Source: Camelus ferus (lineage: Eukaryota). Taken from it: DNA of 64,000 nt. The notes beneath the pieces were generated by a model. That model was not told the DNA's origin. It saw only the letters and a program-made list of their open reading frames with translations, and ran no database searches. A program made the position numbers and the translations under genes. The DNA lies in assembly GCF_009834535.1 (NCBI RefSeq), contig NC_045727.1, forward strand, positions 10,664,001 through 10,728,000, read 5' to 3'. Position 1 is the first letter of the stretch; each line of letters opens with the position of its first letter. Positions 1-43,931 of the stretch are shown piece after piece.

Positions 1-269
1 CTGCATAAACAAACTGCATTACTTCTTTAACTTGCTGACCCAAGCAAAAACCTCTTTCTTATGTCAAATCTTCACAAGTAAGTGATTCTTTGTCGAAAAA
101 GGGTTATAAACAGCCCACTCTGGTCACTTCTTAGGTCCTATACCTACGCGGCCTCCGTTCGCACTGAATTAAATTTGTTTTCCTCATGTTAACCTGTCTT
201 CTGTCAATCTGATTATTAGACCAACAAAAAGAACCTAGAAGAGTAGAGAAAAATTTTTCCTCCCCTACA
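1..269 (+). mobile_element. 3' part of an ERV1-like solo LTR, truncated by the window edge
   Basis: TATA-like ttataaa near 104, poly(A)-like aattaaa near 168, and the terminus GAACCTAGAAGAGTAGAGAAAAATTTTTCCTCCCCTACA typical of ERV1 LTR ends. It abuts L1 sequence. Family not assigned. Confidence 0.65.
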
Positions 270-800
270 AATTCTTCTAGAAAACCGAAGGCAGGAACAC
301 TTCCTAACTCATCCATGAGGCCAGCATTACCCTGATAGCAAAACCAAAGACAGTCATGAGGAAACTACAGACCAACACAGGCACAGGCACAGGCACAAGA
401 ATTTGTTAAAAAATTTCAAAATCAATGACACCTAAGCTTCTACCTTAAGAAACTAGAAAAAAAGCAATGTCCAAATTATACAGGAAAAAAGGAAATAATG
501 AAGAACAGAAATAAACTAAACAGAAAAACAAAAATCAGTGAAGCCAAAACTAGTTCTTTAAGCTGAACAATCAAATTGATAAGCCCCTGGCCAAACTGGT
601 CCAGAAAAAGAGACACAAATGACCAACAGCAGGAATGAAAAGAGAGGGTATCACGGCCGACGCTAAGGTATTGAAAGGATAAAGGAATATTATGAACAAC
701 TGTGCCAGTAAATTCAACAACACAGATGAAACGGACAGATTCCTGACACACACTGCTGACGCTCACTCAAGAAAAGTTAACCAGAATGAAAACAAAACAG
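270..800 (+). mobile_element. Old LINE-1 ORF2 fragments (two pieces) with a short (GGCACA)n repeat near 377-398
   Basis: L1 ORF2 motifs gaggccagcattaccctgat and gaatattatgaacaactgtgccagtaaattcaacaacacagatgaaacggacagattcct; A-rich and full of stops. Confidence 0.8.
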
Positions 801-2566
801 GCCATCAAAATGGCCACATCATGAGACACATAATTTTAAGCATGGGTATTATTTTCCCATCATATAATTACCATCACATTACAGTTCAGAAAGCTCAAAC
901 TGCTTCAAATTGTTTCTAATTTCCTAACCCAGATTTGTGATTCTCCTAGTGATGGTCTAGAAGCCCAGAAATTCAGCTTCTGGTTGTGTTTCTAGTAAAT
1001 GACAGACAAGGGCCAAGTCATAGCTGATTCTCTAATTCTTATTCCAGCCAAACTTCAGTACTGAGCCAGAAAAAATTACCCTGCAAGGCAGGGACAAATT
1101 CTCCAGAAGGTACTCAGCTTTGTGATGAGGCTCTAGGATGCACAAACCAGGATTTAAACAAAATTTCTGCTGCTGGGATTCCCATTAACTTCATCTTGAG
1201 ACACAAACCCTTCCAACAAAGGGAAAGCATTTGTAATGGCCAACAGTCTCTAAGAGGCCAGAGTCATTTCTCTTTGGTTATACTCACACCAACTCATCAC
1301 CCCCTCAACAGGTGTTTCCTAATTATTTGGTTAAACTAAGTATTGTGAATTTCAGCACTTCAACTTGAGAAGACCCTGGCACACCAGCAAACAATGGCTG
1401 CACAGCTCTTCTGAAAGTATTAATCATGATATTTTTCATACTTAAGACAAAGCCTTTGCTAAAAATAACAGCTCCTACAAATGATGAAATGCACAAATTT
1501 CTCCTCATCTTGAAGTTTTCTTTTATCTGTCAGGTAACAGAAGACACCTTTCCTTTATACTTAGAATAATTCACATTTACAAAAAAACAAAAAACTTTTG
1601 AGCAGTTTGATTTCATGCTGTGCAATGACCAATAAGAGAAGCCTCAAAACCAACTTCTGCAAAGGGAGAATGCAGCAGCTAGTGAGTTATTTCATCACCT
1701 ACTTTATTCATAGTCTGGAAACTACCACGGTGATCAGAAGAGGACACGGGAGCTGAGGGGACATCAATCTCAGTTAACAGGGAACAAGGGAGACATGCAC
1801 TGGACCATGCAAAGTCCTGACGGGGGTTATTCCAGCCTCTCAACGTAAAGCGGATTCTTGGGCACCACTGGTTTTAGACGTGCATAATGACAGAGGTGTT
1901 GATGGGGTTTCATTCATATGTAAACCAGTAACATAATTAATTCAACAATCACCTAGATACCTATGAACTGAGAACGTTAAAATGAATAAATTAAAGCCAG
2001 AAGCCTACCCTGCCGTGGGAAAACAGGAATTCTCATATACGCGTTGCTGATGTAAAGAAATTTGACATCCCATATACACCCACCCCAGTGAGAAACAGTG
2101 CATGCACACTCCTCACTGACACTCTAGGTGTGAGTGGCTGGAAAACATCCACATATTCAGCGACTGAAAGCCGAACTCAGCCACACCCTGGAATACTCCG
2201 CAGCAGTAAACTAGGATCAGCTCTTTGCCGCTAATGCAGAGGGACGGGGGCTGTTTGCACAATGAAAAAACGAGGCAAGAGAAAGGGGAGACGTACACAA
2301 ACCTACTCTTGTGTGCTTGGTTTTGCTTAAAAAAAAGAAAACAAAAACAAACAACCCTTCTAATGGATGAAGCGAGATTTTTTTGGCATATGCCGTCTTA
2401 TATCGTTATTATTTCAAGGTCTATTCTTGTAAGTGCCCTCATGAGCTCATAGCAAAGACAAACTAGAGTTTAAGTGCAACCCTTGGCGTTACCTTCGGAA
2501 GGAAGAGTCTGTGGAGTGTGTCCATCGCCAGCCCCGACCCACATGCTCTGGAGATGAACTCGCCAC

Positions 2567-2689
2567 CCGGGCCTGACCCCCGGGCCCCTGTGCCATCCCG
2601 TCCTGTCCACTGGGCCCCACCGCCCGTCCAGGCCTGACCCCTGGTCCCCTGTGCCCGTCCCGCCCGGTCCTCTGGGCCCTACCGCCCGT
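2567..2689. repeat. Two-copy imperfect tandem duplication with a 61-62 bp unit
   Basis: 2567-2627 ccgggcctgacccccgggcccctgtgcc...ccgcccgt versus 2628-2689 ccaggcctgacccctggtcccctgtgcc...ccgcccgt. Confidence 0.9.
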
Positions 2690-2691
2690 AC

Positions 2692-2694
2692 CAT
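2692..2694 (-). CDS. TUBA3: Exon 1 (ATG only) of a second alpha-tubulin-3-like gene; the rest is presumably left of the window
   Basis: The minus strand reads ...gaccaccATG|gtacgg, the same ATG|GTACGG junction as the intact TUBA3 at 38453-38461, and the upstream promoter is homologous. Exon 2 (RECISIHV) is not found in 1-2690, so intactness is unknown. Confidence 0.7.
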
Positions 2695-2749
2695 GGTGGT
2701 CACCGCCGAGCCGCTCGCTGTGCTCCCAACTCCTCTTTGTCCGACACCA

Positions 2750-3160
2750 CGCGCGCAACTGCCGGCCCGCCGCACTGCACGCCGTGTCCTGATTGGTTCG
2801 CAGGCTGAGCAACTGCCATTGGCCCCGACAGCCTCGAGGGCAGGCCCCAGGCCAGGACCCTAATGGCAATTGGCCTGTTCCTTGACCAGCGAATTCTCTT
2901 TTGATTGGTCGTCACTTTGGGCGGGAAGTGGCGACGGGAAGGTCTCGTATTGCGGTGGCAGGAAGCCGCGGGCTGGCGCCTGCTGAGTGACCACAAAGGG
3001 AGGCCGGGTAATTTATCTGTAAAATGCGGTCCCTTTGTGTTGCTGCACGGGGTGTAGGAAGTGACAGGGCTCATCACCGACAGGGCTTTGCAGACTTGGC
3101 TGGAGCAGACACGTGCAAGGGCTCCTCAGTTAGCAACCTGCGCTGACGTCATTACCCCGC
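2750..3160 (-). promoter_or_regulatory. CpG-island promoter of the left TUBA3-like copy
   Basis: CCAAT boxes (ATTGG on +) at 2792-2796, 2818-2822, 2869-2873 and 2904-2908; E2F-type TTCCCGCC at 2920-2927; MYB-type CAACTGCC at 2756-2763 and 2810-2817; E-box CACGTG at 3110-3115; CRE TGACGTCA at 3144-3151. Confidence 0.8.
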
Positions 3161-5810
3161 CTCCTGCCAGAGCACGAGGTACCGGCCACGAGGTAGGTTC
3201 CGGGAAGGAGGCGCTGCGAAGCTGGGGAAAGTTCCGCCTTCCAGGGGGCGGGGCTTCTGCATGGGTCCGAAAATATCGCGAGTTTTCCAAGCAGCAAAGC
3301 TGGGTGGGTGGGCTGGATGGGGCAGGGCAGGCGGGGGACAGCGAGGTTGCAGCGCGGAGGGCAGTTGACCGCGGCCGGACCAGGGGCTTGGCTTTCCCGG
3401 GTGGGTGGAGCCAACCGGCAGCAAGGCGGGCTGACTCGGCCGTTTAGGGGGAGGATGGGGCAGGAGATTCCACAGGTGGTCACTGCAGGAGGCCAGAGAA
3501 TTACCAACCTGCTCACACACCTTGGCGAAAGGACACAGAATTTCCAAGGTTCCTGGAGGGGTGACTGATAACCTCAATTCACCACCCTCCCAGGATGCCC
3601 CCCATTCCTGCTGCTGATACGTGGGAGAGTCGTGTTTACCCGACCCAAGAAACGAGCCTTTTCTTGGCTGTTCTAAGCACAACCCAAATACACTGGAATT
3701 TTCATGGAGAAGACAGGACCAAAGAGGAGTTAATTAAAGAAAATACAAATAAATATAAATTATGAATTACTATAAAGTAAAATTAAAAACATAGATGCAA
3801 AATCCAGATTTCCTACCCTGCCTACCACTGCTAGGTCTTGGAGGCATGGGATGGTGTTCACAGCAGCAGTTCAGATGGTCTGGGCTCGAGCAACACCCCC
3901 TACCACCGCCATGGATTCCATGGGGCTAACTCTTCAGCTCCCCACTCCTCCCTTGCTCAGGCAGATTTCAGAGAATGTGGTCAGGAAGTTAGAAGGGTCG
4001 AGCAGCTAACTAGGGTTTCCAGGGAGTGATTTTGGAAAACCAGAAGCCCTCCTCTTCCAGGGAGGCCCACCACGATGGGTGCAAGGAACTAGGGCCAGCC
4101 TTGGCCAGAGAAGGTGATGGGAAATGGGAGAGAGGGAACCTCTGGTAAGGGCTAGAGCAGGTGGGGACAGATGTGACTGCCATGGCCAGGGCTGGGGGAC
4201 AAGAGAAGGAAGAGCTGGGAAACTGGTCCACGGTGACAAGTGATGGGGAATTTGGGAGAGGTAATATGGGGCAAGATGCTGGTGGACTTTGAAGGGTGGA
4301 GTCTGAGCTAAATTTGGCCCTGGGGAGAAGAGCAGATTGGGGAGAGGAGTGTCCAGCAAGGGGACAAGAGAGGACAGAAGCTGCAGGAGACAGGAAAAAG
4401 TGGAGGGAAAGATCACAATGACTTGGGAGAAATGTAAGATTTCTTTTGCCTTCCTTCCCCCCACCACAAAGCTCCCAGAAACTGGGGAAGGCCTGGACTA
4501 ACTGAAATAAATAAGCTGATCTGAGCAATGTCATTTGGATGCTAACAGAAATGAAAGTTCCGGGAGGCAGAAGGATGTAGGGTCAACTGGATCACATGTG
4601 GCATGTCATCTGAGTGACTGAGAGGAGTCAGAGGAGTAATGCCTTAACTTGAGTCCAGCAATGCAAAAGGGGCCAGTCTGGGGAGAAACAGTGGTCTCTC
4701 AACTTCTTAACCTTCCTCTATTTACCAGGCTTCACCTGTCTCTGGCCACTCAACTCTTCCTGTCTCTGGGGTTCTTTCTTGCAAACACTTTGGTGCTTTA
4801 TCTTTTATTTTTATAACAATTTTATTCATATAACATAATATTCACCAGCTTAAAATGTACACTTCCATGGTTTTTGGTATATCCACAGAATTGTGCGACC
4901 ATCACCACTGTTTAACTTCAGAACATTTTGATCACCCCAGGAAGAATCCCTGCACCCATTAGCAGTCACCTCCCATTGCCCTCCCCTCTCCCCAATCCCC
5001 TGGAAACCATTAATCTGCTCTTTGTCTCTATAGATGTGCCTGAAATCATACAATATGTAATCTTCTGTAACTGGCTTCTTTCACCTAGCATAATATTTTC
5101 AAGATTTATCTATGTTTCTCACCACTTTATTTATTCTCGTAGATAAATAATAGTCCATTGTATGGGTATTTCATATTTAACCCATCTTCAGTTGGTGAAT
5201 ATTTGGATTGTTTCTGCTTTTTGGCCATTATGAGTAACGCTGCTGTGATAATTCATGTACAAGTTTTTGTCTTGATAGATGTTTTCATTTCTTAGGTATA
5301 TACTTAGGAACAGAATGGCTGGATCATACAGTAACTTCCTGTTTCACATTTTAAGGAACTGCCAAATGGTTTTCCAAAGCAGCCGCACCCACCAGCAGTG
5401 TAAGGGAGTTCCAATGACTCCACATTATCTTTAACACGTGTTGTTACCTGACTTTTTGCCTATAGCTGTCCTAGAGGTGCATTGCACTGTGCTTTTGATT
5501 TGCATTTCCCTAATGACTAGTGATGTTAAGAATCCTTCCGTGTGGTTACTGGACATTTGTATATCCTCTTTGAAGAACTGTCTGTTAAGATCCTTTGTGC
5601 ATTTTTGTTGTTGAGTTGTGAGAGCTCTTTATATATTCTGGATACAATCCCCTTAGCAAATACATGATTTGCAAAATTTTCCACTCTGGATTATCTTTCA
5701 CTTTTTTGGTGGTATCCTTTGAAGCATAAAAGTTTTTAATTTCAATGAACTCACATTCATCTATATATTTCTTAGTTTGCTTGAACATTTTGGTAGCATA
5801 TTTATGAAAC

Positions 5811-6236
5811 TGTTACCCAAAAACTGGGTTCGCCTCTTGGTGGGTATCTAACCAAAAGACACAATGAAGTCAAAGAGCAGGAGAAGAAAGGATTTATTAC
5901 TCACAGCAAATAAGGAGAACACTAGGGATATTTCCCAAAACACCAGGGATATCTCCCCGAACAGCAAAATTGGGGAAGATTTAAGCTAAGGATGTATGCA
6001 TATTTATGGAGGAGCTTGGGTGGTGTATGCATATCCATGAAAGAGCTTGAGAGCAGAGGAGAATTCAACATAGAATTGGGGCATAGTTTGACAGAGTCCA
6101 GACTCTAGTTGATTGAAGTCACAGAAGTCAGCAAAGGTCCACATTAGCATTCTTTGGATTCCAGTTAGTCTGGTTATGTCGAGAAAGTTATGTCTGGTTC
6201 TCTTCCTTTGAGGACCCTATACACTATCTGCCTACA
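5811..6236 (-). mobile_element. Solo ERV LTR inserted in L1
   Basis: TG...CA ends (tgttacc...cctaca) and AATAAA on the minus strand near 5893. It interrupts the L1 motif aagaaac|cattgcc with a near-duplicated aaac/gaac flank. Confidence 0.65.
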
Positions 6237-6293
6237 GAACCATTGCCCATGCACAGTCATAAAGAGTTACTCCTATGTTTTCTTGTAAGAGTT

Positions 6294-6833
6294 TGTTGAG
6301 AGTTTATTTAAACTACTCGATAATGTTGCTATATCAGCACCCACTTTGTGTGGCCAAGTGGCCTGCAGGGATCTTCAGCTGATAATTCACTCCTCCCAAG
6401 AGTGCATGCCCTAGATGACAGCCTGCAGGTCACAGGTAATGTAAGTTGTTGACATGAATCCCTCAACTGCCCTTATGATAAGCATTCTCCCTGACCTCCC
6501 AGGCCAGCCCCTTGAGTGATCCTTAGATAAGCTTACCAAAACCCCATTCTCATTGTTCTGAATTGACCAATCCAGACTCAGCCAGGGAACTCCAAAGCAC
6601 TCCACCTGCAGACCCTAAAAAAGGCATGTCTCCCAGGTCCTGTCATGTTCTCTGCCCACACAATGCCTTAACCGCCTGTGGCCCCTCAAGGTGTGCTGTG
6701 TACCTCCTCTGGGATCTGTGAATAACAAACTTCTCTACTTCAATTCCTTCATGGTCTCTTGTTGAAGAGCGGCTCACCATCCAATACCCTCAGGGCTCCA
6801 CTTAACAAATGTTAATTCAGCCATGTCACAACA
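6294..6833 (+). mobile_element. Second, unrelated solo ERV LTR inserted in the same L1
   Basis: Inverted termini TGTTG...CAACA, flanks gagtt/gcgtt (5-bp TSD with one mismatch), and internal CCAAT, TATA-like and aataacaaa motifs in LTR order. Confidence 0.7.
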
Positions 6834-7034
6834 GCGTTCTATCGGTCCAGCTCTTACATTGAGGTCTTTGATTCATTTTGAGCTAATTTTTGTCTGTGGT
6901 ATGATGTAAGGGTCCAACTTCATTCATTTATTTGCATGAGGATATTCATCTGTTTCAACACGGTTTCTTGAAAAGACTATTCTTTCCCTCATTGAATTAT
7001 TTTGGCACTCTTGTCAAAAATCGATTTGCTATCA

Positions 7035-8150
7035 GCACAATGAGAAGACAAACCACAGACAGACTAGGAGGCATATCTGCAAAAGATACATCTGATAAAG
7101 GATTATTATCCAAAATATACAAAGAACCCTTAAAAGTCAACACTNNNNNNNNNNNNNNNNNNNNNNNNNNNNNNNNNNNNNNNNNNNNNNNNNNNNNNNN
7201 NNNNNNNNNNNNNNNNNNNNNNNNNNNNNNNNNNNNNNNNNNNNNNNNNNNNNNNNNNNNNNNNNNNNNNNNNNNNNNNNNNNNNNNNNTACCACTACAT
7301 ACGTCTTAGAATGGCGAAAATCNNNNNNNNNNNNNNNNNNNNNNNNNNNNNNNNNNNNNNNNNNNNNNNNNNNNNNNNNNNNNNNNNNNNNNNNNNNNNN
7401 NNNNNNNNNNNNNNNNNNNNNNNNNNNNNNNNNNNNNNNNNNNNNNNNNNNNNNNNNNNNNNNNNNNNNNNNNNNNNNNNNNNNNNNTGAATTGAAAATT
7501 TATCTCCACACAAAAACCTGCACATGGATGTTTATAGCAGCTTTATTCATAATTGCCAAAACTTGGAAGCAACCAAGACATCCTTCAGTAGGACGGATAA
7601 ATAAACTGTTGTACATNNNNNNNNNNNNNNNNNNNNNNNNNNNNNNNNNNNNNNNNNNNNNNNNNNNNNNNNNNNNNNNNNNNNNNNNNNNNNNNNNNNN
7701 NNNNNNNNNNNNNNNNNNNNNNNNNNNNNNNNNNNNNNNNNNNNNNNNNNNNNNNNNNNNNNNNNNNNNNNNNNNNNNNNNNNNNNNNNNNNNNNNNNNN
7801 NNNNNNNNNNNNNNNNNNNNNNNNNNNNNNNNNNNNNNNNNNNNNNNNNNNNNNNNNNNNNNNNNNNNNNNNNNNNNNNNNNNNNNNNNNNNNNNNNNNN
7901 NNNNNTTATACATTCATCGAAACCTATAGTGTGTACATCACCAAGAGAGAACCCTAATGTAAATGACTTTAGGTGATAATGATGTGTCAATATAGGTTCA
8001 TTGACTATAGCAAATGTACTATTTGGGCAGATGTTGATAATGGAGGAGGGTGTGCTTGTGTAGGGGGTGGGGGTATATGGGAACTCCACCTTTTGTTTAA
8101 TTTTCCTGTGAACTTAAAACTGCTCTAAAAAACAAAATCTATTTTTAAAA
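7035..8150 (+). mobile_element. LINE-1 3' end on the plus strand, nested inside the minus-strand L1
   Basis: Sense L1 motifs gatacatctgataaaggattattatccaaaatatacaaagaac, atgtttatagcagctttattcataattgccaaaacttggaagcaacc and the 3' end ctgtgaacttaaaactgctctaaaaaa. Confidence 0.8.
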
Positions 8151-12028: not shown

Positions 12029-14659
12029 ATGGCCTTGGGGCTGCCCAGCGCTGCTGGCCTGGCCCGCCTCTGCCAGAGGGTGAATCGGCTGAAGCGGCTG
12101 GAGGACACCACCATGGAGACATCACTGCGGCGCTGCCTGTCCACACTGGACCTGACCCTGCTGGGAGTGGGGGCCACAGTGGGCTCGGGCCTCTATGTGC
12201 TCACAGGCACTGTGGCCAAAGAGATAACCGGCCCGGCGGTAGTCGTGGCCTTCGGAGTGGCCGCTGTGGCCTCCCTGCTGGCGGCCCTGTGCTACGCGGA
12301 GTTCGGGGCCCGCGTGCACCGCACAGGCTCTGCCTACCTGTTCACCTATGTGTCCATGGGTGAGCTGTGGGCCTTCCTCATCGGCTGGAACTTGGTGCTT
12401 GAGTATGTGATTGGTGGTGCCGCCGTGGCCCGTGCCTGGAGCGGCTACCTGGATGCCATGTTCGACCACCAAATCCGCAACTTCACTGAGGCTCACATAG
12501 GCGTCTGGCAGGTGCCCTTCCTGGCCAGATACCCAGACATCCTGGCTGCCAGCATCCTGCTCCTGGCCTCCGTCTTCGTCTCCTGTGGAGCCCAAGTCTC
12601 CTCCTGGCTCAACCACACCTTCTCTGGCATCAGCATGCTCGTCATCCTCTTTGTCATCATCCTGGGCTTCATCCTGGCCCGCCCACACAACTGGGGAGAG
12701 CAGGAGGGCGGCTTTGCGCCCTTCGGCTTCTCTGGCATCATGGCCGGCACTGCTACCTGCTTCTATGCCTTCGTGGGCTTTGACGTCATCTCTGCCTCCA
12801 GCGAGGAGGCCCGGAACCCGAAGCGTGCCGTGCCCCTGGCCATCGCCATCTCGCTTGGCCTGGCAGCCAGCGCCTACATCCTGGTGTCCACTGTGCTCAC
12901 CCTCATGATGCCCTGGCACAGCCTGGACCCCGACTCTGCGCTAGCCGACGCCTTCTACCAGCGGGGCTACCGGTGGGCCGGCTTCGTTGTGGCGACTGGC
13001 TCCATCTGCGGTAAGTGGAGCCCTGCCCTGGCCCCCAGGGAGCACACCTCCATCTGGGCCTTAGTTTTACGAGTTGTATAATGGGTTCAGGAAGGTGCTA
13101 ATTATGAGACTGTCCCCCCAGGCTTGTTGGGAGGGACCTGGCTGCCCCACCCTCATCGTCCGTTCTGCGCATGTGCGTCCAGGTCTCTCTTGGACAGCAT
13201 GACTCAGCCCTCACCAGATTCCCAGTGGCCTGCGACCTAAACTGAGGGGTCCCATTCCTGGGTTGGGGGAGTGACAATCCCGACTCCACAGTCACTCAGG
13301 CTCACTCTGAGAACCCAGACAAACTCGTGCCCCTGCTCCCAAGGTGGGAGTGGCCCCGGGGGTCTGTCTGCCATGCTGACCAGCCCCCACCCTCTGCCGC
13401 AGCCATGAACACAGTCCTGCTCAGTAACCTTTTTTCCCTGCCGCGCATCATCTACGCCATGGCCGTCGACGGGCTCTTCTTCCAGGCGTTTGCCTATGTC
13501 CACCCCAGGACACAGGTGCCCTTGGTGGGCATCCTGGTGTTTGGGGTTCTCACGGCTTCTGTGGCGCTGCTGCTGGACCTTGAGGCGTTGGTCCAGTTCC
13601 TGTCCATCGGCACACTGCTGGCCTACACCTTCGTGGCCATCAGTGTTATTGTGCTACGATTCCAGAAGGTCTCTCTGTCCAGTTCCCCAAGCCCAGCCAG
13701 CCCTCGTCCCGCGCCCAAGGAGTACAACTCCTTCTCAGACCGTATAGAGCTGGTGGGCATTGAGCAGGCCCTGGCCCCTGAGCCTGGGCAGCTCCGGCCA
13801 GTCCTGAGGCCCTACCTGGGCTTCCTGGATAGGTGTGGCCCTGGAGCTGCTGTGACTTGGGCCATCTGCATCCTGGTGGCCTCAGCCATCACCCTGGGTG
13901 GCTTGCTGATCTTCGGGGACTCAGCCCTGCACCTCCCTCGCTGGGGCTACATCCTGCTACTCCTGCTCTGCAGTGTCATGTTTCTGCTCAGTGTCCTTGT
14001 CCTGGGGGCCTACCAGCAGCAGTGCCAGCAGGACACTTTCCAGGTACTCCCCACCCCCACCCCCCACTTGCTGTCAGCCCACCAGATCCTCCCACCCCCC
14101 GCCCACCTGGTCCTCTGCCACAGCGGAACGAGCCATGGCTCCCGTCTCTGGGAGGCAGCAGGCACAGCCCCCTCCACCTGCAGTCGGGCCCTGGTCTCCA
14201 GGATCTCCAGAGGCGGAGAAAGTCTCTGAGGTCTCGGGAGAAGCCCCAGCCCAGCCCTGCCCTTGTGCCTCAGATCCCCCTGGTGCCGCTGACTCCAGCG
14301 CTGAGCGTCCTCCTCAACATCTGCCTCATGCTGAAGCTGAGCTACCTGACCTGGGTGCGCTTCTCCATCTGGCTGCTCATCGGTGAGTGGGGCCTGGGCT
14401 GGGCTCTGGGCAGCCCGGAGGAGGGCGAGCCCCGGGACCTGCCGCTCATGCTCCCCCGCCCATTGCAGGGCTCACCGTGTATTTCTGTTATGGCATCTGG
14501 CACAGCAAGGAGAACCGGCGGGAGCCTCCAGGGCTGACCGCCACACGCTACGTGGTTTTCCCCAGCGGCAGCCTGGAGGGGACAGTGCAAGCCGTGCAGC
14601 TCCCCAGCGAGGCGCCAGCCCAGGAGCCCGGCCACGCCGAGCAGCCCTCCAGTCCATGA
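12029..14659 (+). CDS. SLC7A4: Cationic amino acid transporter 4 (640 aa); exons 12029-13010, 13403-14043, 14274-14382, 14469-14659
   Basis: Translation matches CAT-4 (RRCLSTLDLTLLGVG...YAEFGARV...GFDVI...LKLSYLTWVRF). All splice sites are GT/AG, phases are consistent, and the total is 1923 nt. Confidence 0.97.
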
Positions 14660-17179
14660 GGAAGGCTGAGGACCTGCCCACCCTTGCCCACCTCCTTGGG
14701 AGGCCTGCCTTCTCTCCAGGGTGGCTCCAGTTTGTGGGCCTGGCCACGCAAGGGGGTCCTTGGGACCTCTGGACTGAAGGGACTGAGCTTCACATCTTTG
14801 GAAATGGGAGTGGCCAGCGCTGGTGCGGTGGACTCTTTGCCCAGTGCCTTCCAGTTTATGACCAACTCCAGCTACCTGGGCAAGTGGGGTGGGCCGGTGG
14901 GGTAGAGTCCCCAGCCTCAGGGATCTACAGTAATAACTGCCCGTGGCCTGCCAGCATCCATTGTTCCTTGTGGCGCCGAGCCCTCACCTGCCTCCAGGAA
15001 CCACTTGTCCCCAGTGCACAGCAAAGACACAGAGCTCTGCAAGGCAGTGGAGGGGGTGTGCAGCCCTGGGACAGCCCTGAGTCGGGGACATTCAGGCCAG
15101 TGCCCTCTGCCCAGCTCAGAGGAAGCTACACTTCCCAGCAGTAGGCACCAGGCACAGAGGGGTCCAAGACTGGGGCAGAGTCAGACTCCCCTCCCCAGGC
15201 TCCTCACCACAGGACGGGTGGACCCAGAAAGTCAAGCCTGGGCCCCCAGGATGCTGCCTAGAAAGGGCAGAGGAATTTTGGGGTCCCCTTGGTTTCCCCG
15301 GGGCTTCCAGAAAGCGTGTTACGTGCCCGAGTCCTGCCCAGGGAGGCAGAGAGACACTCACACGGGCATGCAGCCACCTGGCCCACACCCTGGGGTGCAC
15401 ACCCACTTGTAGACTGAGGCAACAGCTGTTTCCAAACTCAGACTTGTGGCAGCTCTCCAGCGGTCATGGCTGGTGCTCCCAGCTCTCCATCTTTGCCCCA
15501 TCCCCAAGGGCTTTGGGTAAAGGCTCCAGTGGTACCTGCGTGGGGATGGGTACGTAAGAGCCTGGGCCTGCTCCAAATTCCTTCCAGCCCACCTGGTCCG
15601 AGGGGGTCCCCAGGCTCACCCTGGCCCGCCCCGCTGGTCCCCCCGGTGATGCTTTCACCACCACAGACACCTCCAGCTCACGTTCCTGCCCGGAAGGACC
15701 ACGCGGGAAGCTGCTGGCTTTGGCAGACTTTACTCCTTCACTGTATAGCCATCACATCAGCTTTCTCTGGGCCCCTGTCCATGTGACCCCACCCCAGGGA
15801 CGCAGGGATCCAGAGGCGGCAGAGACCCCAAGGCTTTGCTGAGGCTCCAGGTGCCAGATGGTTCCAGATGCTAGCCCAGCCTGAGCCCCAGCCTGGCCCT
15901 CCCCATTCGGCCCACGTCACTGCACCAGCAAGCAGCCAGCACGCCTGCTCACCAGGGCCCATGAGAAAGCAGCCCCTCACCTCCCAGGGGCCTCCCCCAA
16001 ATCCCTGCCGCTGACTTGGGGCCAAGACCCCTACAGCCTGTCCCTCCCTCGACTGTGGGCACCCCCTGCGGCGTGGGGAGCTCCCAGCAGGCAGGAGTCA
16101 GACCCCCATGAGGATTCCAGAGCCAGAACCAGGCCAGCCTCTGGGGGCCTCTGTGATTTGTTTGGGACTTTCCCTTCAGCCCAGATGGCTGGACTCCACC
16201 TGAAGTGAAGGACAGGGTCTCCTTCAAGCTGTTGCCTCAGGCTGGTTCTTAGGTGTGACCTCGGGCAGCAGTGAATTCCAGACACACTCCTCCCCACCCC
16301 AACAGGTTCCAGGAGGCTGGGCTGGGTGTCACCCAGGGGGCCCAGAGAAGGTCCTAGAGCCTCCAGTACTGCCGACTTAGCTCCTCCATCCTCTCCTCCC
16401 AATCCCAGCCCTCCACAGGCCAAGGGCTGTCCCCAGAAGGGGCTGGTGCACAGAAAATGAGTGGGTGCCTGTGCCCTTGCCTGGGGGCCCGAGGGGGTTG
16501 GGTTATCTGGCCTCACTTGCATTCCATGGATGAGGCCCCACACTGGGTGGGGCCCTGCCCCAGGCAGCCCAGCACCAGCACAGTGGAGGCAACCCTCTTA
16601 TCAGGCCTCTGTCTACTCTGCCTTGGACTCGGGCAGCACAGACCCTGGAGCAGCGCAGCTAAGAGTGTGGGGGCTCTACCTGCGATGGGGGCGCTGCCAG
16701 GGGAGAGGGCTGGGGTCTGCACAGACAGTGGGAGGGTCTGTTCTGACCACTGGTGAGTGGGCTGAGGCTGGGAGCACTGGTGACAGAGCCTGGGAGAGAG
16801 TTCTCCAGACACAGACACAGCAGGAGCCCCTCAGGACTAATGCCCTGTGACATGCTCTGCTGCAGGTCCCTGTGCAAAACTGGCTTCTGTATCTCCCCAG
16901 GCAGCACCCTACCAAGGCCTGAGTCAGGGGAGGGATGGTCCGCCTGGGAGTTGAAGGATGGAATTCTCCACCCCCTCGCCCCCCGTGCTGGGGCTCCATC
17001 CACGGGGTTCCCCAGGCAAGGCCCCCACCTTTCCCAGCCCAGACCCCCAACAGCAGGGAACAGCTACTAGCCTCAGGAAGGGCTGGCGAGTGGGGGCCAG
17101 TGAGTGGAGACAGGGCCAGGGTCCCGGTGTCCAGCTCCCAGTAGCAGCCGTGGCCATCGGGACAGATGCTGGGTCCTCC

Positions 17180-20100
17180 CTAAGGCCCCTGGGCAGCCGG
17201 GCACGGGGGTGTGGATGCCTGCTCTGTCTGCTCGGGGCTGGTGGTCACCTTTGGAGCCTTTGCCTGCAGGTGAGAACAGCAGATCAGAGCTCTAGCCTGT
17301 ACCCTCCAGAAGTGTAGCGAAGCCCAGGGGCCAGGTCGGCCCACAGCTCACCTCCTCATACTTGGTCTTCCAGTAGAAAGGAGCTTCTCCATCCACGTAC
17401 AGCAGCAGTAGGTCACAGAGGAAGGTGATCTGGGAGAGGAGAGGCAGGACTGACCTGTGTCCTGGCCCCCAACCTGCCCACCCCTCCTGCCACATCCCCA
17501 GCCCTCACCCCAAGGGCTGACCTCAGGCACCAGGGGCCCATGCTCACCAAACCAGAGGGAGCCCACGTTAGGCAGACTCACCACACCCAGCCAAGCTGCT
17601 CCTGTGCCCAGAGTGATGGTCGTAGGAATGAGCGCGAACTTCCCTGCCTGAGAGATCTGGGTGAGCCTCAGCCAGGACCATCACCACCACCTCCCCTCCA
17701 CCCCTGTCCACCCCTGCCACCTACCCGCCCCGTGACGAGGATGTCGAAACGGATCCCGTAGAGTTTGAGCAGACTCCGGGCCTCCACGCCCGAGGCCTCC
17801 CACCAGTGAGTGGCTGTCCTGGGTATAGGAGAGAGCCTGGTGGCCTGCTCTGCCTGCTCCGGGGCCAGGCTGGCCCTCCCAAGCCTCCATCTGACTCATC
17901 CACTGACTCCATGAACCCCTCAGCCCCATCCCTGGGTCTCAGCCCTGTGTTGTCACTGCAGATACAGCAAAGGAGCAAGCTGGGACCCGCCTCTCAGGAG
18001 CTCCCTGCCTGTGGAGGGGACAGGGGCAGAAAGGTCCCTAAACAGACACTGGCCGTGGGGGTGGGGGAGGTGGGGGGCAGACCCAGGGCTATGAGGGTCT
18101 GGGGAGGGATCTCACTCCTCCCCCGTGGACCTGGGAAGGTTTGCTGCAAGGGAGACTCTCAGGATGGTTTTCCAGCAGTCAGGGAGGTGTTCTTGACAGA
18201 GAAAGTAGGGCCGGTAAGGACACAGGGGTATGGGGAACAGACCCTGGGTGGGGGGCCAGTCCCTAATCATCACAAAGGGCAGGAGATCAGGGAAGCCAGG
18301 CCAGGCCAGGTCCAGGGAGAAAAGTCAAAGGCATCATCTCCAGACCTGGCGGCTGTGTGAGCACAGGTGCGTGTGTGTGTGTGTGCGTGCCTGTGTGTGC
18401 ACGCCTGTGTGTGCACGCACGTGACAAGGTGACATGAGGTGGTAGAAGGACAGGATTCCAGGGGTGGGGGGGTCTGTTTAGGAGACTCAAAGACATGACA
18501 AGAAACACCATGCAAGATCCCTGAGCGGCAACCTACATGTCCAGTGACAGATGACGATAAAGAAGATGTGGTGCGTGTATACAATGGAATACTACTCAGC
18601 CATTTGGCAAAAATGAAATAATGCCATTTGCAGCAACATGGATGAACCTGGAGATGATCCTAAGTGAAGTAAGTCAGGTAGAGAAAGACAAATATCATAT
18701 GATTTCACTTATATGGGGAATCTAAAATATGACAAATAACTTACAAAACAGATACTCACAGACAGAGAAAACAAACTGTGGGAGTCTGGGGTTAGCAGAC
18801 ATGAATTACTGTATACAAAACAGACAAACAATGAAGTCCTACTGGGTCGCACAGGGAACTACATTCAACATCCTATAATAAACTATACTGGAAAGAATAT
18901 GAAAAAGAATGTGTATAATAACATATTTATATGTATAACTGAATCACTATGCTGTACGCCAGAAATGACACAATGTTGTAAACCAACTACACTTAGAAAA
19001 AAAGATCCTTGAGTGAATCCTGGATTGGAAAATAAAAAGATTTAGGACTATTACTGGCACAGCTGGGGAGGGAAATTTAAACATTAGATTCATCTTTCCA
19101 ATGTTACATTTCCTGAGTGTGACAATAGGACAGCAGTCCCTTGGGAAAGGTCCCCACTCTCAGGATAGCCCTGAGAGGGGCGAGTGTCCACCGGATGTCT
19201 GCCATTTACTTTCAAATGGTTCAGTTTGAAATCTATCTAAATGTACCTGCTCGCTCTAGAGGGAGAGAGAGAGCAAATGCAGCAATGTGGTAAAAACAAA
19301 AACAAAAGCAAACCCTACTCAACCCAGGTGCCACTGTACGGGTGTTCACAATACTGAACTCTGACATTGTCTATAGATTTTTAAAAATTTTTTGATAAAG
19401 CTTTAAGGGAAAATTAAAAAAAGAAAGCCTCCTGTGTGGTGGAAGGGGGAGGGACGAGGGGCTGGGGGGTGGTTCTAGGAGCAGCCAGGGGTGTGGGGTG
19501 TGTGTGTGTGGGGAGGGCTCAGGTGGGAGGCTGGGCGGAGCCTGTGCTGGGGGACCTGGAGCTGAGAAAACCCCGTCCTGCCCCTGGGCCCTCCACCCAC
19601 ACACAGGAGGCGTCCGGAGTTCTGGGAGGGTGGTCTGTCCTGACCGCCACAGAAGGACAGGTGGAGGAGGACCAGCTGAGGCGCAGGTGGGCAGTGGGGG
19701 CCGCACCTGAAGTTGTAGCTCCTCTCCTGCAGCTGGAAGGAGTAGTGGGGCCGGCAGTCAGAGCCCCCAGCGTCCAGGTCACAATCCCAGCGGACTTGGA
19801 TGCCCACGGCACCACCCTGTACACAGCACAGCATTGCTCCACCGGCTCGTGGGCCCAGAACGCTGTCCCAGCCCTCCTGGAACCCTGTCCCGACCCATGG
19901 ACCCACCAGCAGTGCCAGGTCCTCAAAGACCCCTCCAGCCGCGGCCACAAGGTCCCCGATGCGGAACACCGGGCAGGAGGGGCTGGAGCTTGGGTCGTAG
20001 CGGCAGCGCTTGAAATAGGTGGGGTCCTGGGTCTCCAAGGCATTGGACCTGAGACAGGTGGGCAGGGGTCAGGCCAGGCAGGGGACAAAGAGGGTCTTTG

Positions 20101-23100
20101 GCCAGTCCGGACACCCCCACCTTACTTGGAGAAGTTAAATTTGTGGAAGGTGATGGTGTTTTTGATGAACAGCGTGAAGTTCTCGGCCTGGACCAGTAGG
20201 GGCTTCCTGCAGGGAAGGAGGGGGGGGGCAGGCTCTGAGGTCCTGGGGCCCCGTCCTGGGGGTGGGGGTGGCGGGTTGGAGGGGAGAGACTTACGTGGGC
20301 ACAGTGCCGCTCTCTACCGGGCACCAGCCCCGGATCTCACAGGTCCTGTGGGTCCCGTTGAACACCACACACTGGCCCGTCTTTATGCCTTGAAAACACA
20401 GGCAAACTCCAGGCCCCCAAACCTCCCCGGGCCTGGGGAGGGGGTGGAGGGGACTGTTGACAAAAAGGAGAGGCACAGAGGCACCAGAAGGCCCGCATGG
20501 AGAGTCACCCAGGGCCCCAGTTACCGTGGCTGTGCGTCCCTGCCTCCCCTTCAGGACAGTCCTCGTCGGCCCAGCAGCTGGCCAGCGGGATGGAGGGGTG
20601 CTGGGATGAAAAAGCAGAGTTGCCAAGGGCCCTGTGGTCCACAGGCACTCGACCCTCCTCGCCTTTGCCCCCCAGGGATCACTGAGTTTGAGGCACATGA
20701 GAAAGCTGAAGGGTGCAAATAAAATAGGGCAGGGGAGCAGCCCTGGCTGGACGGGTGAGCAGGTGCTATATTCCAAGGCCGAGCATCGTCCCCTCCCTGC
20801 CTGTTCTTTCGTAAAACAGGGACCTTGGTGCCTGCACACAGCCACGGAGTTCTGGGATCAGCCAGAAGGGGAAGGTGCTAAGCTTCCCAAGGGTCCCATG
20901 CCCCAGGAGGTAGGTACAGGCTCACAGACGCAGTTCCATAGTCCTGTCCCGGGCTGACATGGATGCCGCTGCCCTGGCTCAGGGGCAGCAGGGAGACCAC
21001 AGCGTCCGGCACTAAGAAGGGCTCAGTGACTCTGAGCCAAAAGTGGTGAGTGGGCAGAGGACACTGTGGGGTCACCTGCTCTCCCTTGCTGTCCCTACCC
21101 GTGTCCTGAGTCTGCCCCTCCTCTCTGCCCTGGCTGGGCCACCATCTCCTTCAACCAGATCCCACAGTGACCACCATGGGGCCCCACCTCTGCCTCATCC
21201 ACCTCCATCCAGCAGCCTGAATGGTCCCTCCTGAGGCGCAAATGATGACCCTGGAGGTGCCTCATCCCATAAGCTCGGAGCCTCTGCCCAGGCAGCCGCC
21301 TCTGCCCGGATGTCCTCAAGATCCCAACTGAGCCTGGAGTCCAGCAGGAAACCCTTCAGATGCCCATCCCTGGGGCTCCCAGCTGTGGCCTCTGCCCCCA
21401 ACACAGAACCTGCCACCATGGCCGGGCCAACTGTGCAGGAGCTTGTCGACGTGGAGGGTGGTTTTGCAGCCCTGGAGGAGGCTTGGCGAGTGTTCTCTGA
21501 AGTCTGTGATGCTACACGGAGCACAGTGCACGTGCCGAGAGGGTGGAGACGACCAGGACTCCAGAGGAGCTGGTCTTGGGAAGAAGGGTTTTCAGATCTG
21601 ATGAATTACTTCCCCGCCCTGAAGTTTTGAGGGGAGAGCCAGAAGCTGGGACACCAGGAAAAGAGGAACCACACAGATTCCAGAAAAGTACAGAACCATG
21701 GCCCCAGCAAAACTGCAGGACAGTCCAGAAACTGAACAATAAGTAAATGTCTTCTGAGCATTTAGAAAGGGAAGGACATTGTGTGTGTTTGTGGAGTGCA
21801 CGTGCCTCAGATCCTTTGAGGACGGGGAGACGAGGGACATAAAACCCCCAGTAACTGGTGGGACCAGCGACCAGGAATCAGGGGTAGGTGACCACACTGT
21901 TACTCTCCAGCCCAGCAAATGATTATGTTTTAGCCTTGATGAAAGAAAGATGCCACCAGAGAGGAAGGCTTCCAAAGCTATGTCCTGGGTCCCAAATGTT
22001 CAAACAAAATTCACAGCCGGGGAACTATACACTTAATGGTTAAGATGGGAAATTTTATGTTACTTGTTTTTTTATCACAATAAAAATGTGCTGAATCCAT
22101 GCTGAATCCCTGGGACTTTCCTAGACAAGGGGGAAAGGTGAGATTTCAGGGAGAGGATCTGCATTTCTGGATGAGAAATGGACAAGGATATAGTGGGGGA
22201 TGCTGGCTTGACCACAGCTGTCATGAAAAATACCCAGACATCGTAAGTGACCCTGAACTCAGCACAAACACGAATGTGCTCTTTGCCCACAAAAACGGAA
22301 GTTGCCTTGGGACACCTGAATGGAGGCCATGTGTAGAGAAGGGAGGTGATCTTCCAGCCTGCCTCCTGCTACTAGAACTGACCTGAGCATTGTGCCCAGT
22401 TCTGGGTGATACTCTGACAATCTGCAGAGACCCCAGAGGGGTCCTAGATGGGGAGGGACCTAGACACCTCGTTGGGGACAGTGGTGGAAGACTCTGGAAG
22501 AAGGCTGCTCAGAGATCCGGAGTCCTGTCACTCACAGGCTGGGCGGCTTTGGGCATGTGAGTCTCCCTTGCTGAGCCTCTGTTTTCTCATCTTAAATGGG
22601 GTCATTTAAGTAGATCCTATTGGGCAGGGTACTTGGGATGACTATGTGAGATGATTCGCGGAAAGGTTTTCTCCCAGAGCCTGGGATAAAGTCGCACTTA
22701 CTGACGAGCCCTCAGTCACCTGGGAAGGAGAAGAGGGGATATGGCTAGTGACCCAGGGCTGGCGGAGGAACTAGGGACCCACTGGGAAGCCCTCAGGCAG
22801 CCTTACCTCTGGGCATCTGCCCTGAACCTGTTCCGGCGTCACAAGGAAATTAGTCACCAAGAAGAACACGTTCTCTCCCTGGAAGGCAAGTGTCAGGGTT
22901 GGTCCCTGCTCCCCTCCCCAACTGGGAGAGGCCTGAAGCTGGAAGCCTGGCTTGTGAGGGAAGGGTCCCATCGAGTCATCAACCCTGTGCCCCAGGAGGA
23001 TGGGAGGCACAAACAGGAGCCTGGCTGGGCTTCTGGCCATTTCTGAGCCCATGTCTGCCTCTTTGAGAAAAGCTTATTTCTCACGTTCACTCTTACTTGT

Positions 23101-28700: not shown

Positions 28701-31700
28701 AGGGTCTTTGCATGGGATGTCTGCTTTACCAGGAACAAGCAGTTCTATCTGCCTGTCCTCAACTACCCTAATCAATTATAAGAATCACCTGGGACCCTGG
28801 GTTAGGAATACAAATTCCACGGCCCTGGACCTACTGAACCTCTGAATCCTCTTGGGGGGTGCCTGTGTATCTGGATTTTAACAGATGCCCCCAGGAGACT
28901 TGTCTGATCCAGAAAGTTCGGGAATCACTGCTCTCTCTGCTTAGAGCAGTGGGGTGGCACCAGCCTTGGCTTGTAAGAATTAGCCCTGGAGTTTAACTGC
29001 CAGAGAACCAGTCTGCCTTGTAAGAAAATCGTTGTGGGAAGTCAATGAAAGTAAAAGAAAAGCTCACTTCAGACTTTCAACTAATTACTAGGTCAGGGGG
29101 CCAGCTCCAGGGGCAGCGAGAATGCAGGGGGCTGGAAGGCTGCACAGTAGGGTTGGGGTTTGGCCTGGAAAAGGACAGACTCAGCAGGACCATTTTGTTT
29201 CCCCAAGGGGGGCTCTGTGGGTGGGCCCGACTCCCTTAGAGGTGAAGGAGCTTGGGTCTCAGTCTCCCCACCTGACCCAAGGCGGGGGTAGCACCTACCT
29301 CATAGTTTGGCCGCAAGAGTCACGAAGAACGAGCTACAAGAGCCGGATTCATGGGTAGAACCTTCTCACCCCTGAGCTGTTCAGCAGAGAGGCTTCCCTT
29401 CAAAGTGGCGGACCGCCACCCTCTTCTCTCAGCTCTGAAAGTGTCTGAGAACCGGCGTGTGTTAGACCCAGTGCCTGGAGCCGCGTCCCAGCAAGTCCTC
29501 ACTGCCCCGCGGGGAGCTCTCCAAGGTGCTGACACTGCCGTGCACTGTGCGTGTCTTCAAACCAGCCTCGGTAGGCCTGTGCTCGGTGCCGGTACCACGG
29601 AGAGGGGTCAGATTCAGATCCCCGAGAGAGACTCCCAGCTAGGGAGGTCTCATGCCCAGAACCTGGAAGGATGGAAGCACAGTGGACATGGGGTCCAAGG
29701 AGGTCCCACCCAGCCCAGCCAGGCAAGCAAGGCTTCCTGGATGGGGGTGAGGAGCTCTCAGCCACGTGAAGAAGGGGGTCAACTGTCCCACCCGGGGTCG
29801 GGGTGGGGGTGGGGGGCAGCTGGAGGCTGAGAACCGGGAGCAGGTCTGAACGTTGAGAGTGGATAGCGGGGCTTCTGCCTATCTTACAGGTAAAACATCT
29901 CTCAGGGTTTCTAACCCACACAGCCCACTCTTTCCTGTTCACCACCACCTCCTCTGCACTGGCCTTATCACCTCTTGCCTAGACTGTGGCATAAACCTTC
30001 CAGCTAGTCCCCTGGCCTCTTGTCTCTGCCCTATCTGAATCTTCTCTCTTGTTTTGTTTTAAATGGAGGTACTGGGGATTGAAGCCAGGACCTTGTGCAT
30101 GCTAAGCATTAACTCTTCCACTGAGCTACGCCCTCCACCCACTCTGTCTCTTAAAGAATCTTTCGAGTGCCCATCAAGCCTACCTCTTTTCACCAGCCTT
30201 CCCCACCCGCACCAGCACCAGGTCTCATGCACTTTCTCAAGTCTTGTGTTCCCCATCCGCTCTTTCCTGGGCCCACTCTCCATGGTGGCTGCACACGGGC
30301 GTGGTGAGTCCCTCAGTCTTCAAGGTTCTCTACACTTTCCTGACCACCCCCTCTACTGGCAGGGTTAGCCCCAACTCTGTTCCCACATCTCCCTGTTTGC
30401 AGTCTACAATAGCTCACATCCCATTAATTTGTATTTATAGCTTCTCTGTTAAATGTGACTTCCTTGTGAGCAGGGCAGGCCCACGTTGGGCTCAACTCCC
30501 TGACCCCCGTGCACAGCAGAGACCCTGGCCCACAGCAAACATTGGCGTCATTTTTTGAATCTTGGTGTTTCTTAAGGAGAGATGCTTGGACCAGCCCTGG
30601 CGGAAAACACAGGACTCACTGAGCTTAACATAAGCTGGAATCACCTGAGAGGCCCAGGAGCCTTAGCCTTTGCCAGGGGACTGGAGGTATGAGGCCCCTG
30701 CCCAGTTAGCCCCTCCCGCCTGTCCTTTGGGGGCAGGTCTCCCAGGAGCCAGCCCCCCATCTTTGCAGCTTTTCAGAAATGAGCCTTGGATCTTTTCTGC
30801 AGAGCTTGGGTGACTTTCATTTTCCTGGGTCCATTTAATGATGACAATGTCTGGTATCCTGTACCTGTCCTCACATCCTCAGTGAGGGGTCCACACTTAA
30901 TGTCACACAGCTCCCCAGACACTCAACTGGAGGTACACCACGCAGGATGGTGATGCACACTTGCTACTGGGCATACGCAGCTGCTTCCCTGAGATGACAG
31001 CCCTGCACCCCGGGATCCCAGCACACACCCTCGAACCCCCACCTGCTCACCTGGGTCCTGTGGTTCGTGGGCCTCAGGAGTGGATGGGAGGGGTGTCTGA
31101 GATGCTTCCGGTGCCAGCTGCCTCTGTGGGACCCTCCTCAGGGAATGGCAGCTGCTGCCTTGCTCTCCCACAGGGCTGACCTGGGGTCTTGCCCCTGACG
31201 TGGCAGGTCAGGCTCTGTCTCCCCAGGGCACCTACGAGCTCTGCTCTTCTCCCCATCACAGTCCCCAAGACAGGTTAATCAAACAGCCTCGAGATCTGTG
31301 ACCTTAAGAGGCCCGTGGCCGAGAACCCAGTCCAAGGCTCATTTACATCCTCATCCTCCCTCTGTGCTGTGCTTCTGGCCTTTCAGCTCCACCGCTTACC
31401 CTCGTCCAAGCCCCAGGGCTCTTCCCTGGAACCTCTGTCCTCTCCCGCTCTCAGCCCATGCTCTTTGCTCCTCATGCATTTCCACAAGCCCTGTGTTCCC
31501 CAGGCCCCCCCAGCATCCTGGGCTCAGAGGCCGTGGCCCTGGCTCCCTCCACCATCACCTGTGGTCCCACAGCTTCGCTCCTTTGCATCCCAGGCAAACA
31601 TCTTCCTGAGGGTCCTGGACATCTCGTACAATGGCTGCGGAGATACCGGAGCCTCTGCGCTGGGGGGAGCTCTCAAGACCAACAACATGCTGGAGGAGCT

Positions 31701-37530: not shown

Positions 37531-38452
37531 GGCTTACGGATTTTTACTTTCATTCCTTTATATTTTTCTGCATTTTTCACACTTCCTACTCTAAGTATGT
37601 GTCGCTTTTATACTCGGAAAGATATACAGTATTTAAGAACACGGTGGAATAGGTGGCATGGCGTGGTCGCAGCCCTGGCCAGGACGGGGGCGCTGCACAC
37701 TGAATCGCGCTCCTCCGACGAGGCTCAGCCACAGTGACCGCACGGAAAGCCAGGACATAATCAGGGTCGCAGAGGCCCTGAAGGTGGGGCCCCGGCCCCG
37801 CAGGATTAGCGCCCTCGGAAGCGCGGGCTCGGTCAGCCGAGTGAACCCGGAAGGGGCCGACCCTCCGAGGGGACGGTCACCTCCAGAGACCAGGGTCCCA
37901 GCCTCGAAGAGCCCTTCCCGCCGCTGCACCCCCTCCCCGCGCCCCTAGAAGCCAAGGAAAGCCAGCCCGGCCATCCTCACGGGATGGTCCGCCCTCCACA
38001 GTGGGCACTGCGCGTCCCAGCCCTGGGATGGGGCCGGGGCTCCGCCCTACCCAGCTCCCTGTAGCGGGCGGTGTAAACCAGGCGGCCGAGCCCGCGAAGA
38101 CCCGATAGGGAGCGGGGTCCCGGGCCAGCAGCACTAGGTGGTGAGCGCCCTGCGGCCGCGCTGACCTGAGGGCAGGGGTTGCGCGGGAGCTCCCGGCTGC
38201 ACTCCACTCTGCGCGACCCACGACCTCGCAGCCTTCCCGCCAAGCCCACATCCAATCAGAACGCACCACTCTCCGCGGGTCGCGCGTCGGCCAATCGGGA
38301 GTGGGGTTCTGGGCCTCGGCCCACCCCACGGCATCCGGGACCAATGGTCGCCGGCGGCGAGTGGGCGGAGCGCGCGGCGAGCCGGCGGCGGCGGCGGCAG
38401 TTAAGCATTAGCAGCGGTTGAGGTTGGAGCGGCGGCGGCGACTGAACTCACC

Positions 38453-43863
<5,411 letters not shown>

Positions 43864-43925
43864 CCGTGAGGCATGGCTGGCGGCCCCGTACCCCGCGACT
43901 ATAACGTTACAGAATGTATTTACCT

Positions 43926-43931
43926 ATTAAA
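43926..43931 (+). terminator. TUBA3: TUBA3 poly(A) signal ATTAAA
   Basis: 62 nt after the stop codon and followed by U/GU-rich sequence. Confidence 0.7.

Follow-up and report, generated by a model that had tools for sequence, protein, structure and literature searches.

Among germline genes controlled by E2F6, mouse Tuba3a is the closest described system to the locus analyzed here. E2F6 binds and represses Tuba3a through a TCCCGC site and excludes E2F1, which occupies the promoter once E2F6 is absent; in E2f6-null embryos, Tuba3a methylation is almost completely lost, and in ES cells, loss of E2f6 alone derepresses the gene (PMC8195999). E2F6 also directs methylation of the promoter via this TCCCGC site (PMC8195999). 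The same study (Dahlet et al. 2021), which cites Pohlers 2005 and Kehoe 2008, places Tuba3a in an "E-box-lacking" class that is unresponsive to MGA knock-down, and also reports that E-boxes are enriched genome-wide in E2F6 peaks (PMC8195999). Slc25a31 and Tex12 resemble it in having an E2F6 site in the CpG-island promoter of a germline gene, and differ in having a functional promoter E-box through which MGA/MAX joins E2F6. Two further systems are relevant. Promoters with several NF-Y-bound CCAAT boxes include those of G2/M genes; co-occupancy of NF-Y with E2F1/4/6 and spaced CCAAT arrays are documented, and across the genome no CCAAT-E2F distance is favored (Dolfini et al. 2016, PMC4889920). 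The pachytene promoters of A-MYB (MYBL1) have YAAC(T/G)G-type words near the start.

Here, we compare these systems with two promoters in a 64,000-nucleotide stretch of camel DNA (the window). An original prediction held that both share an E2F6 site, three NF-Y boxes, a MYB site, and nearby E-boxes, together silenced in somatic cells by E2F6 and MGA/MAX and activated by A-MYB. The two promoters are homologous, their motifs and spacings are conserved, both are CpG islands, and the coding sequence is intact and constrained. We consider it probable that they are the core promoters of two inverted TUBA3 genes, descended from one ancestral promoter, gated by E2F6, and driven by NF-Y and E2F. For protein-DNA contacts and expression in camel, we infer the pattern by orthology with mouse Tuba3a.

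Layout of the two TUBA3 promoters

The left promoter (MZT2 side) is on the minus strand and the right promoter (THAP7 side) on the plus strand; their elements are given in Table 1. On re-reading both stretches, all of the predicted motif coordinates hold, as do the CCAAT spacings (35/51 bp in the left copy, 39/50 bp in the right). The layout is common to both copies far beyond chance: a gapped triple-CCAAT pattern has exactly two matches in the 64-kb window, both of them the TUBA3 promoters, versus 0.03 expected, and 0 of 100 shuffles reached two. The E2F-type word TTCCCGCC is not in numerical excess (three matches versus 2.06 expected in 64 kb), and all three matches lie in these two promoters, including an extra right-side copy that the prediction had missed. 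Both modules are closed by CACCATGGTACGG, which is the entire coding exon 1 plus splice donor. Sequence between the motifs has diverged, as had been proposed: the promoters align at ~51%, and window 1-3600 gave no blastn match anywhere else in the window.

Further elements became apparent. The left promoter has a fourth CCAAT box that was absent from the predicted list, and the right promoter is without one. A second left GGCAGTTG, also missing from the prediction, directly abuts CCAAT box 3. In the right promoter, a second MYB-like word, CGGTTG, lies inside the conserved GCAGCGGTTGAGGT; it is common to the right type, cats, marmoset, and L004 (GCA_009828535.3) and absent from the left type. 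The CCAAT boxes of both copies have NF-Y-type flanks (RRCCAATSR), a single orientation, and gaps of 26-51 bp (the criterion being at least 24 bp). Each promoter is a CpG island although the window as a whole is CpG-poor, a state expected of sequence that escapes methylation in the germ line.

Table 1. Elements of the left and right TUBA3 promoters and genes, in window positions (minus-strand features are written from their 5' end; fractions count the other promoters scanned that have a counterpart).
Feature	Sequence	Position	Strand	Remark
Left E2F/E2F6-type site	TTCCCGCC	2927..2920	-	19 bp 5' of CCAAT box 1; 231 bp before ATG
Left CCAAT box 1	GACCAATCA	2908..2904	-	6/6
Left CCAAT box 2	GGCCAATTG	2873..2869	-	35 bp from box 1; 5/6
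Left CCAAT box 3	GGCCAATGG	2822..2818	-	51 bp from box 2; 4/6
Left second copy of the MYB-type/initiator word	GGCAGTTG	2817..2810	-	
Left CCAAT box 4	AACCAATCA	2796..2792	-	26 bp past box 3; also in reindeer, cats, marmoset
Left MYB-type CMGTTR element or initiator	GGCAGTTG	2763..2756	-	67 bp before ATG
Left coding exon 1 and GT donor		2696..2692	-	exon is ATG only, 2696..2694; context CACC-ATG-GTACGG
Left CpG island		2601..3400	.	CpG observed/expected 0.63-0.90 vs 0.37 whole window
Left E-box	CACGTG	3110-3115	.	419 bp upstream of left ATG
Right extra E2F-type word	TTCCCGCC	37915-37922		
Right E2F/E2F6-type site	TTCCCGCC	38234-38241	+	18 bp 5' of CCAAT box 1; 219 bp before ATG
Right CCAAT box 1	TCCAATCAG	38252..38256	+	
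Right CCAAT box 2	GGCCAATCG	38291..38295	+	39 bp from box 1
Right CCAAT box 3	GACCAATGG	38341..38345	+	50 bp from box 2
Right CMGTTR element or initiator	GGCAGTTA	38396..38403	+	57 bp before ATG
Right second MYB-like word	CGGTTG	38415..38420	+	inside GCAGCGGTTGAGGT
Right coding exon 1 (ATG) and GT donor		38453..38457	+	context CACC-ATG-GTACGG
Right CpG island		37601..38800	.	CpG observed/expected 0.72-1.10 vs 0.37 whole window
Right E-boxes	CACGTG	38637 and 38849	+	+184 and +396 from ATG, inside intron 1
Right TUBA3 exons 2-5		40327-40548, 40886-41035, 41335-~42015, ~43567-43863	+	

Gene structure and selection on the left copy

In window 1-2690, a search for tubulin exon 2 found none, and the only left coding exon in the window is the 3-nt exon 1. 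We followed the left locus onto a dromedary contig (L001), reached by a protein search that returned two dromedary tubulin models. This contig is the reverse complement of window 1-7144 at 99.4% identity and extends past the window's left edge; it includes the left promoter, an intron 1 of ~7.1 kb, TUBA3 exons 2-5, and then MZT2. As read from this contig, the left element is a second TUBA3 gene, with exons 2-5 beyond the left edge of the window. The gene order is MZT2, TUBA3 (left, minus strand), SLC7A4, P2RX6, an LRR gene, TUBA3 (right, plus strand), THAP7, and LZTR1. In the right gene, the canonical protein is matched exactly by codons 2-75, 76-125, 126-352, and 401-450, the part read; an N mask (43562-43709) covers codons 353-400 and the intron-4 acceptor.

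Counting introns, the two gene bodies have 99% identity (window 40295-43938 versus L001 12620-16258). The homologous tract begins ~35-70 bp before exon 2 and stops a few bases past ATTAAA, and the promoter, exon 1, and intron 1, which lie outside it, share nothing at the level of blast similarity. Differences between the gene bodies number 33, of which 19 are in the first ~300 bp (40306-40602) and six in 40830-43561. Because those six amount to less than the 0.6% inter-assembly divergence, conversion is recent or ongoing. Given such homogenization (concerted evolution), an intact left reading frame alone is weak evidence. In exon 2, the least homogenized part, the copies differ by eight synonymous and no nonsynonymous changes, an outcome with a chance of ~2 in 100,000, taking about three quarters of random coding changes as protein-altering (our own estimate). 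Reindeer carries, beside MZT2, a left-type promoter (72.9% identical to camel) with the ATG|GT exon and a 7.1-kb intron, so this structure has been retained since the camel/ruminant split. The proposal that the left copy is still under selection thus gains support from exon 2 and the reindeer orthologue, evidence beyond the interval for which it was made; we regard the left copy as a complete gene apparently under purifying selection. Like reindeer, camels have a second functional-looking TUBA3 beside MZT2, with a very different promoter sequence and the same layout.

Three observations concern neighboring sequence and other copies. After a 1000-N gap, the left gene body is repeated in L001 16259-20862 at 99.97% identity (17259-20862 equals 12655-16258), for which a scaffolding artefact is a likelier source than a third gene. 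Cats (L006-L011) have one THAP7-side TUBA3 and at least three MZT2-side copies with promoters ~96-100% identical; in contrast to camel and reindeer, homogenization or recent duplication in cats appears to take in the promoter. Between P2RX6 and the right TUBA3, window 31315-31713 encodes an LRR ORF (Pfam LRR_6, E = 1.3e-4, just under the curated cut-off). We take this ORF to resemble LRRC74B, in which case its position would differ from what we presume to be the human order.

A cross-species footprint of short words

We compared TUBA3 promoters from hamster (L003), L004, reindeer (L005), cats (L006-L011, sampled at both THAP7-side and MZT2-side loci), and marmoset (L014/15), giving a footprint of seven promoters in six lineages. 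Two loci were left out for want of a usable promoter (bison L002, where the contig ends at exon 2, and red deer L012, which has gaps), and panda L013 was rejected as a different tubulin locus. The E2F-type word TTCCCGCC is in all seven promoters, always 18-19 bp from CCAAT box 1. Across species, the gaps are 35-40 bp between boxes 1 and 2, 50-51 bp between boxes 2 and 3, and 25-26 bp between boxes 3 and 4.

An alignment-free scan anchored on box 1 asked which camel-promoter 5- to 7-mers recur at the same place in the six other promoters. The E2F word CTTCCCGCC and the anchor itself (CCAATCAG, box 1) were found in all six, box 2 in five, and both CCAATGG (box 3) and ACCAATC (box 4) in four. The GGCAGTT element (CGGCAGTT) and GGGCCT, between boxes 2 and 3, recurred in three to four of six; GCGGTTGAG and the ATG/donor word CATGGTA recurred in three. 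Block-shuffled controls yielded essentially no such words (null ~0); at the widest tolerance (±25 bp), GC-rich low-complexity words (GCGGCGG) before GGCAGTT passed as well. The idea of a natural phylogenetic footprint is therefore borne out for the E2F site, the CCAAT boxes, GGCAGTT, and the ATG/donor. For the NF-Y component, predicted as three boxes, the CCAAT array is kept as a group and the strict triplet is not: in reindeer, boxes 2 and 3 are lost, having become CCGAT and CCAAC; hamster has lost its boxes 3 and 4; and L004, like camel right, has lost box 4.

By overall sequence, the left type (camel and reindeer) stands apart as a long-branch clade with ~50% identity to each of the other promoters, and the camel right promoter groups with cats, hamster, and primate-type sequences. 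With the left type only ~50% identical elsewhere, the spacers are saturated and the words kept. Camel left and reindeer agree at every letter of the E2F site, of boxes 1 and 4, and of GGCAGTTG and CACCATGGTA. Identity over the whole promoter (72.9%) is not above that of alignable intron 1 (76.5%), so constraint is limited to short words. Within camels, window 2400-3400 and dromedary L001 differ by six substitutions, none in motifs; only ~0.3 would be expected there, so this comparison has no power. Around the E2F site and box 1, the hamster and camel right promoters match at every letter, which makes the camel E2F site the orthologue of the rodent site.

L004 (9712-9790) carries a tandem duplication of the E2F-CCAAT1 unit, with a mutated E2F word (TTCCTGCC) in the upstream copy. 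The bird "TBA3" loci (L016-L019, between HLTF and HPS3) have an inverted GGCGGGAA, one CCAATCAGAGG, and a CCAACGG, and a search of these loci for the CCAAT triple found none; since their orthology is doubtful and their layout differs, we set them aside as TUBA3 comparisons. In two of them (L016 18932-19060; L018 8881-9010), the inverted GGCGGGAA lies ~86 bp before AGCCAATCAGAGG, followed by AGCCAACGG, which hints that an E2F + CCAAT promoter may predate mammals.

Proposed E2F6 gating of an NF-Y/E2F promoter and alternative readings

Silencing of mouse Tuba3 by E2F6, on which the prediction drew, is published for Tuba3a through its TCCCGC site (PMC8195999), and reading the camel site as an E2F6 site and the grouped CCAAT boxes as NF-Y-type appears supported. 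The camel genes resemble mouse Tuba3a in gene family (orthologous), in the visible protein (identical), in having a CpG-island promoter with a TCCCGC-type E2F6 site near the start, and in that an E-box is not a conserved element; they differ in that camel keeps two promoter types of very different sequence. Like NF-Y multi-CCAAT promoters, the TUBA3 promoters are TATA-less CpG islands with several same-sense CCAAT boxes that have NF-Y-type flanks and lie at least 25 bp apart, and with an E2F-family partner. Unlike in those promoters, the TUBA3 array is preceded by its E2F site and lacks a CDE/CHR element downstream, the expected output is germline rather than cell-cycle, and the E2F-CCAAT distance is fixed at 18-19 bp in six lineages. 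Given that no distance preference is seen genome-wide, this fixed distance is a locus-specific feature.

In the reading that we prefer, the ancestral promoter would have had, in order, the TTCCCGCC E2F site, then 18-19 bp on, three or four same-sense NF-Y-type CCAAT boxes, a CMGTTR word ~55-60 bp past box 3, and a leader of ~60 bp ending in ATG|GT. NF-Y on the CCAAT array, together with an activating E2F, would make this CpG-island promoter intrinsically active with ubiquitous factors. In the embryo and somatic tissue, E2F6 would take the E2F site, keep E2F1 off, and seed lasting DNA methylation; in germ cells, the island would be unmethylated and the gene on. Tissue specificity would then come mainly from the repressor gate rather than from a germ-cell activator, with E-boxes as bystanders. 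Activation of Tuba3a by E2F6 loss alone implies activators of broad availability; NF-Y with an activating E2F answers to this better than a requirement for A-MYB would. The conserved layout likewise points to ubiquitous NF-Y, and not to a germ-cell factor, as the source of the activity that E2F6 would gate. The result is otherwise largely what orthology with mouse Tuba3a would predict, E2F6 control being already established in mouse; what is added here is the conserved spacing definition and the contrast between left and right paralogues. It provides a sequence-only definition of the TUBA3 promoter parts that have persisted through the divergence of the mammalian orders compared (the E2F site, how far it lies from CCAAT box 1, and the order and spacing of the boxes, without the E-boxes), which sharpens reporter and ChIP work on a model E2F6 target.

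The activator arm of the prediction turns on the GGCAGTT word, which had been read as a MYB site. Its CMGTTR form occurs in camel left and right, reindeer, cats, and marmoset (four of six lineages), and CAGTTR is kept exactly in five of eight aligned promoters. These YAAC(T/G)G-type words near the presumed start recall A-MYB pachytene promoters, from which TUBA3 differs in that the word is not kept in hamster or L004 and coincides in position with a likely initiator. It is quite possible, if still short of probable, that the word is an initiator (transcription start) or 5'-leader element instead, which would make a pachytene activator unnecessary. GGCAGT fits BBCABW, which we take to be the loose human initiator consensus. 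It lies 55-59 bp past box 3 and 33 bp past box 4, where NF-Y promoters usually start; with the start at GGCAGTT, box 3 would be at -55 to -59 and box 4 at about -33 (the NF-Y norm being about -60 to -100). In L004, TAGTTG keeps TA there and breaks the MYB word, and hamster has no MYB word at this place. Derepression of Tuba3a in ES cells by E2f6 loss alone, with E2F1 then binding, means that no germ-cell activator is required (PMC8195999), and a literature search of partial coverage found no link between A-MYB/Mybl1 and Tuba3 regulation. Against an initiator, marmoset has CCGTTG, twice, keeping the MYB core (YAACGG) and losing the initiator A; 20-25 bp farther downstream, the right type, cats, and primates all conserve the second word, CGGTTG; and there is the exact CAGTTR of most aligned promoters. 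On these sequence grounds, a true MYB site is a somewhat doubtful reading of the word.

The prediction's E-box/MGA arm fares worse. Dual PRC1.6 targeting by E2F6 and MGA/MAX E-boxes, as at Slc25a31 or Tex12, has in its favor the CACGTG words within 600 bp of both camel start codons and of reindeer's, and the genome-wide E-box enrichment in E2F6 peaks. We nevertheless find it very improbable: the left E-box is upstream of the ATG and the right ones are intronic, at non-homologous positions; the flanks of the camel-left and reindeer words are unrelated; a ±600-bp interval around the ATG is free of CACGTG in cats, hamster, marmoset, and L004; and a 6-mer occurs by chance about once per few promoters in 1.2 kb of GC-rich DNA. 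Mouse Tuba3a itself has no E-box and does not respond to MGA knock-down (PMC8195999). Judged by position and flanks, the E-boxes are not part of the conserved TUBA3 module, and TUBA3 promoters differ from Slc25a31 and Tex12 in having no E-box at a conserved position. A rather unlikely but more far-reaching view is that the fixed E2F-CCAAT-array-MYB composite is itself the functional unit of an "E2F6-only" germline class, with gaps of ~38, 50, and 26 bp. NF-Y would keep the site accessible, in the embryo to E2F6 and in spermatocytes to an activating E2F and A-MYB. If true, this would explain how E2F6 outcompetes E2F1 without E-box help, and the camel left/right pair, with spacers saturated and gene bodies homogenized, would be a natural minimal definition of the unit. 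In literature searches of partial coverage, we found no mention of the fixed-spacing CCAAT array or of the CMGTTR word for Tuba3a, and nothing relevant on E2F6 with NF-Y at germline genes.

Improbable, too, is that the left promoter is a relic, its gene body overwritten from the right copy and its motifs slowly decaying or serving, for example, a divergent transcript. Near-identical gene bodies, introns included, mean that intactness alone proves little; left intron 1 is unusually long (~7.1 kb); and the left island reaches upstream to 3400, with a CRE and GC boxes. Weighing against decay are the eight synonymous and zero nonsynonymous changes in exon 2, the same promoter type, exon, and intron beside MZT2 in reindeer, the words that stay letter-perfect between camel left and reindeer while spacers are saturated, and the retained CpG content of the left promoter; ORFs upstream of it have no Pfam match. 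We therefore keep to two E2F6-gated, NF-Y/E2F-driven TUBA3 promoters as the probable reading.

Other features of the left locus

RNA-labelled runs (X1-X4) cover 0.86-0.91 of the left promoter and were rejected as expression evidence: X1, X2, and X4 contain 0.98 of the sampled words of an intergenic control, so the runs carry camel genomic DNA and are uninformative on transcription. These three are RNA-Seq libraries labelled "reproductive system metagenome" with much host genomic DNA, unfit for use as expression evidence.

The upstream half of the left CpG island includes a perfect CRE (TGACGTCA, 3144-3151), which was not found in the other promoters scanned, and GC boxes (3240-3252). Intron 1 of the left gene opens, directly behind exon 1, with a GC-rich unit of 62 bp that is repeated twice (2570-2689). 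Its reindeer orthologue has many more copies, up to +371, with GGGCGG at alternating intervals of ~31 and ~49 bp, i.e., every ~80 bp. The ORFs upstream of the left promoter that are without a Pfam match lie at 3061-3682. Farther upstream, a block at ~3448-3682, which is 750-990 bp before the left ATG, shares 79% identity with reindeer across 239 bp, exceeding the identity of the promoter itself; it may be an enhancer or an unannotated exon.
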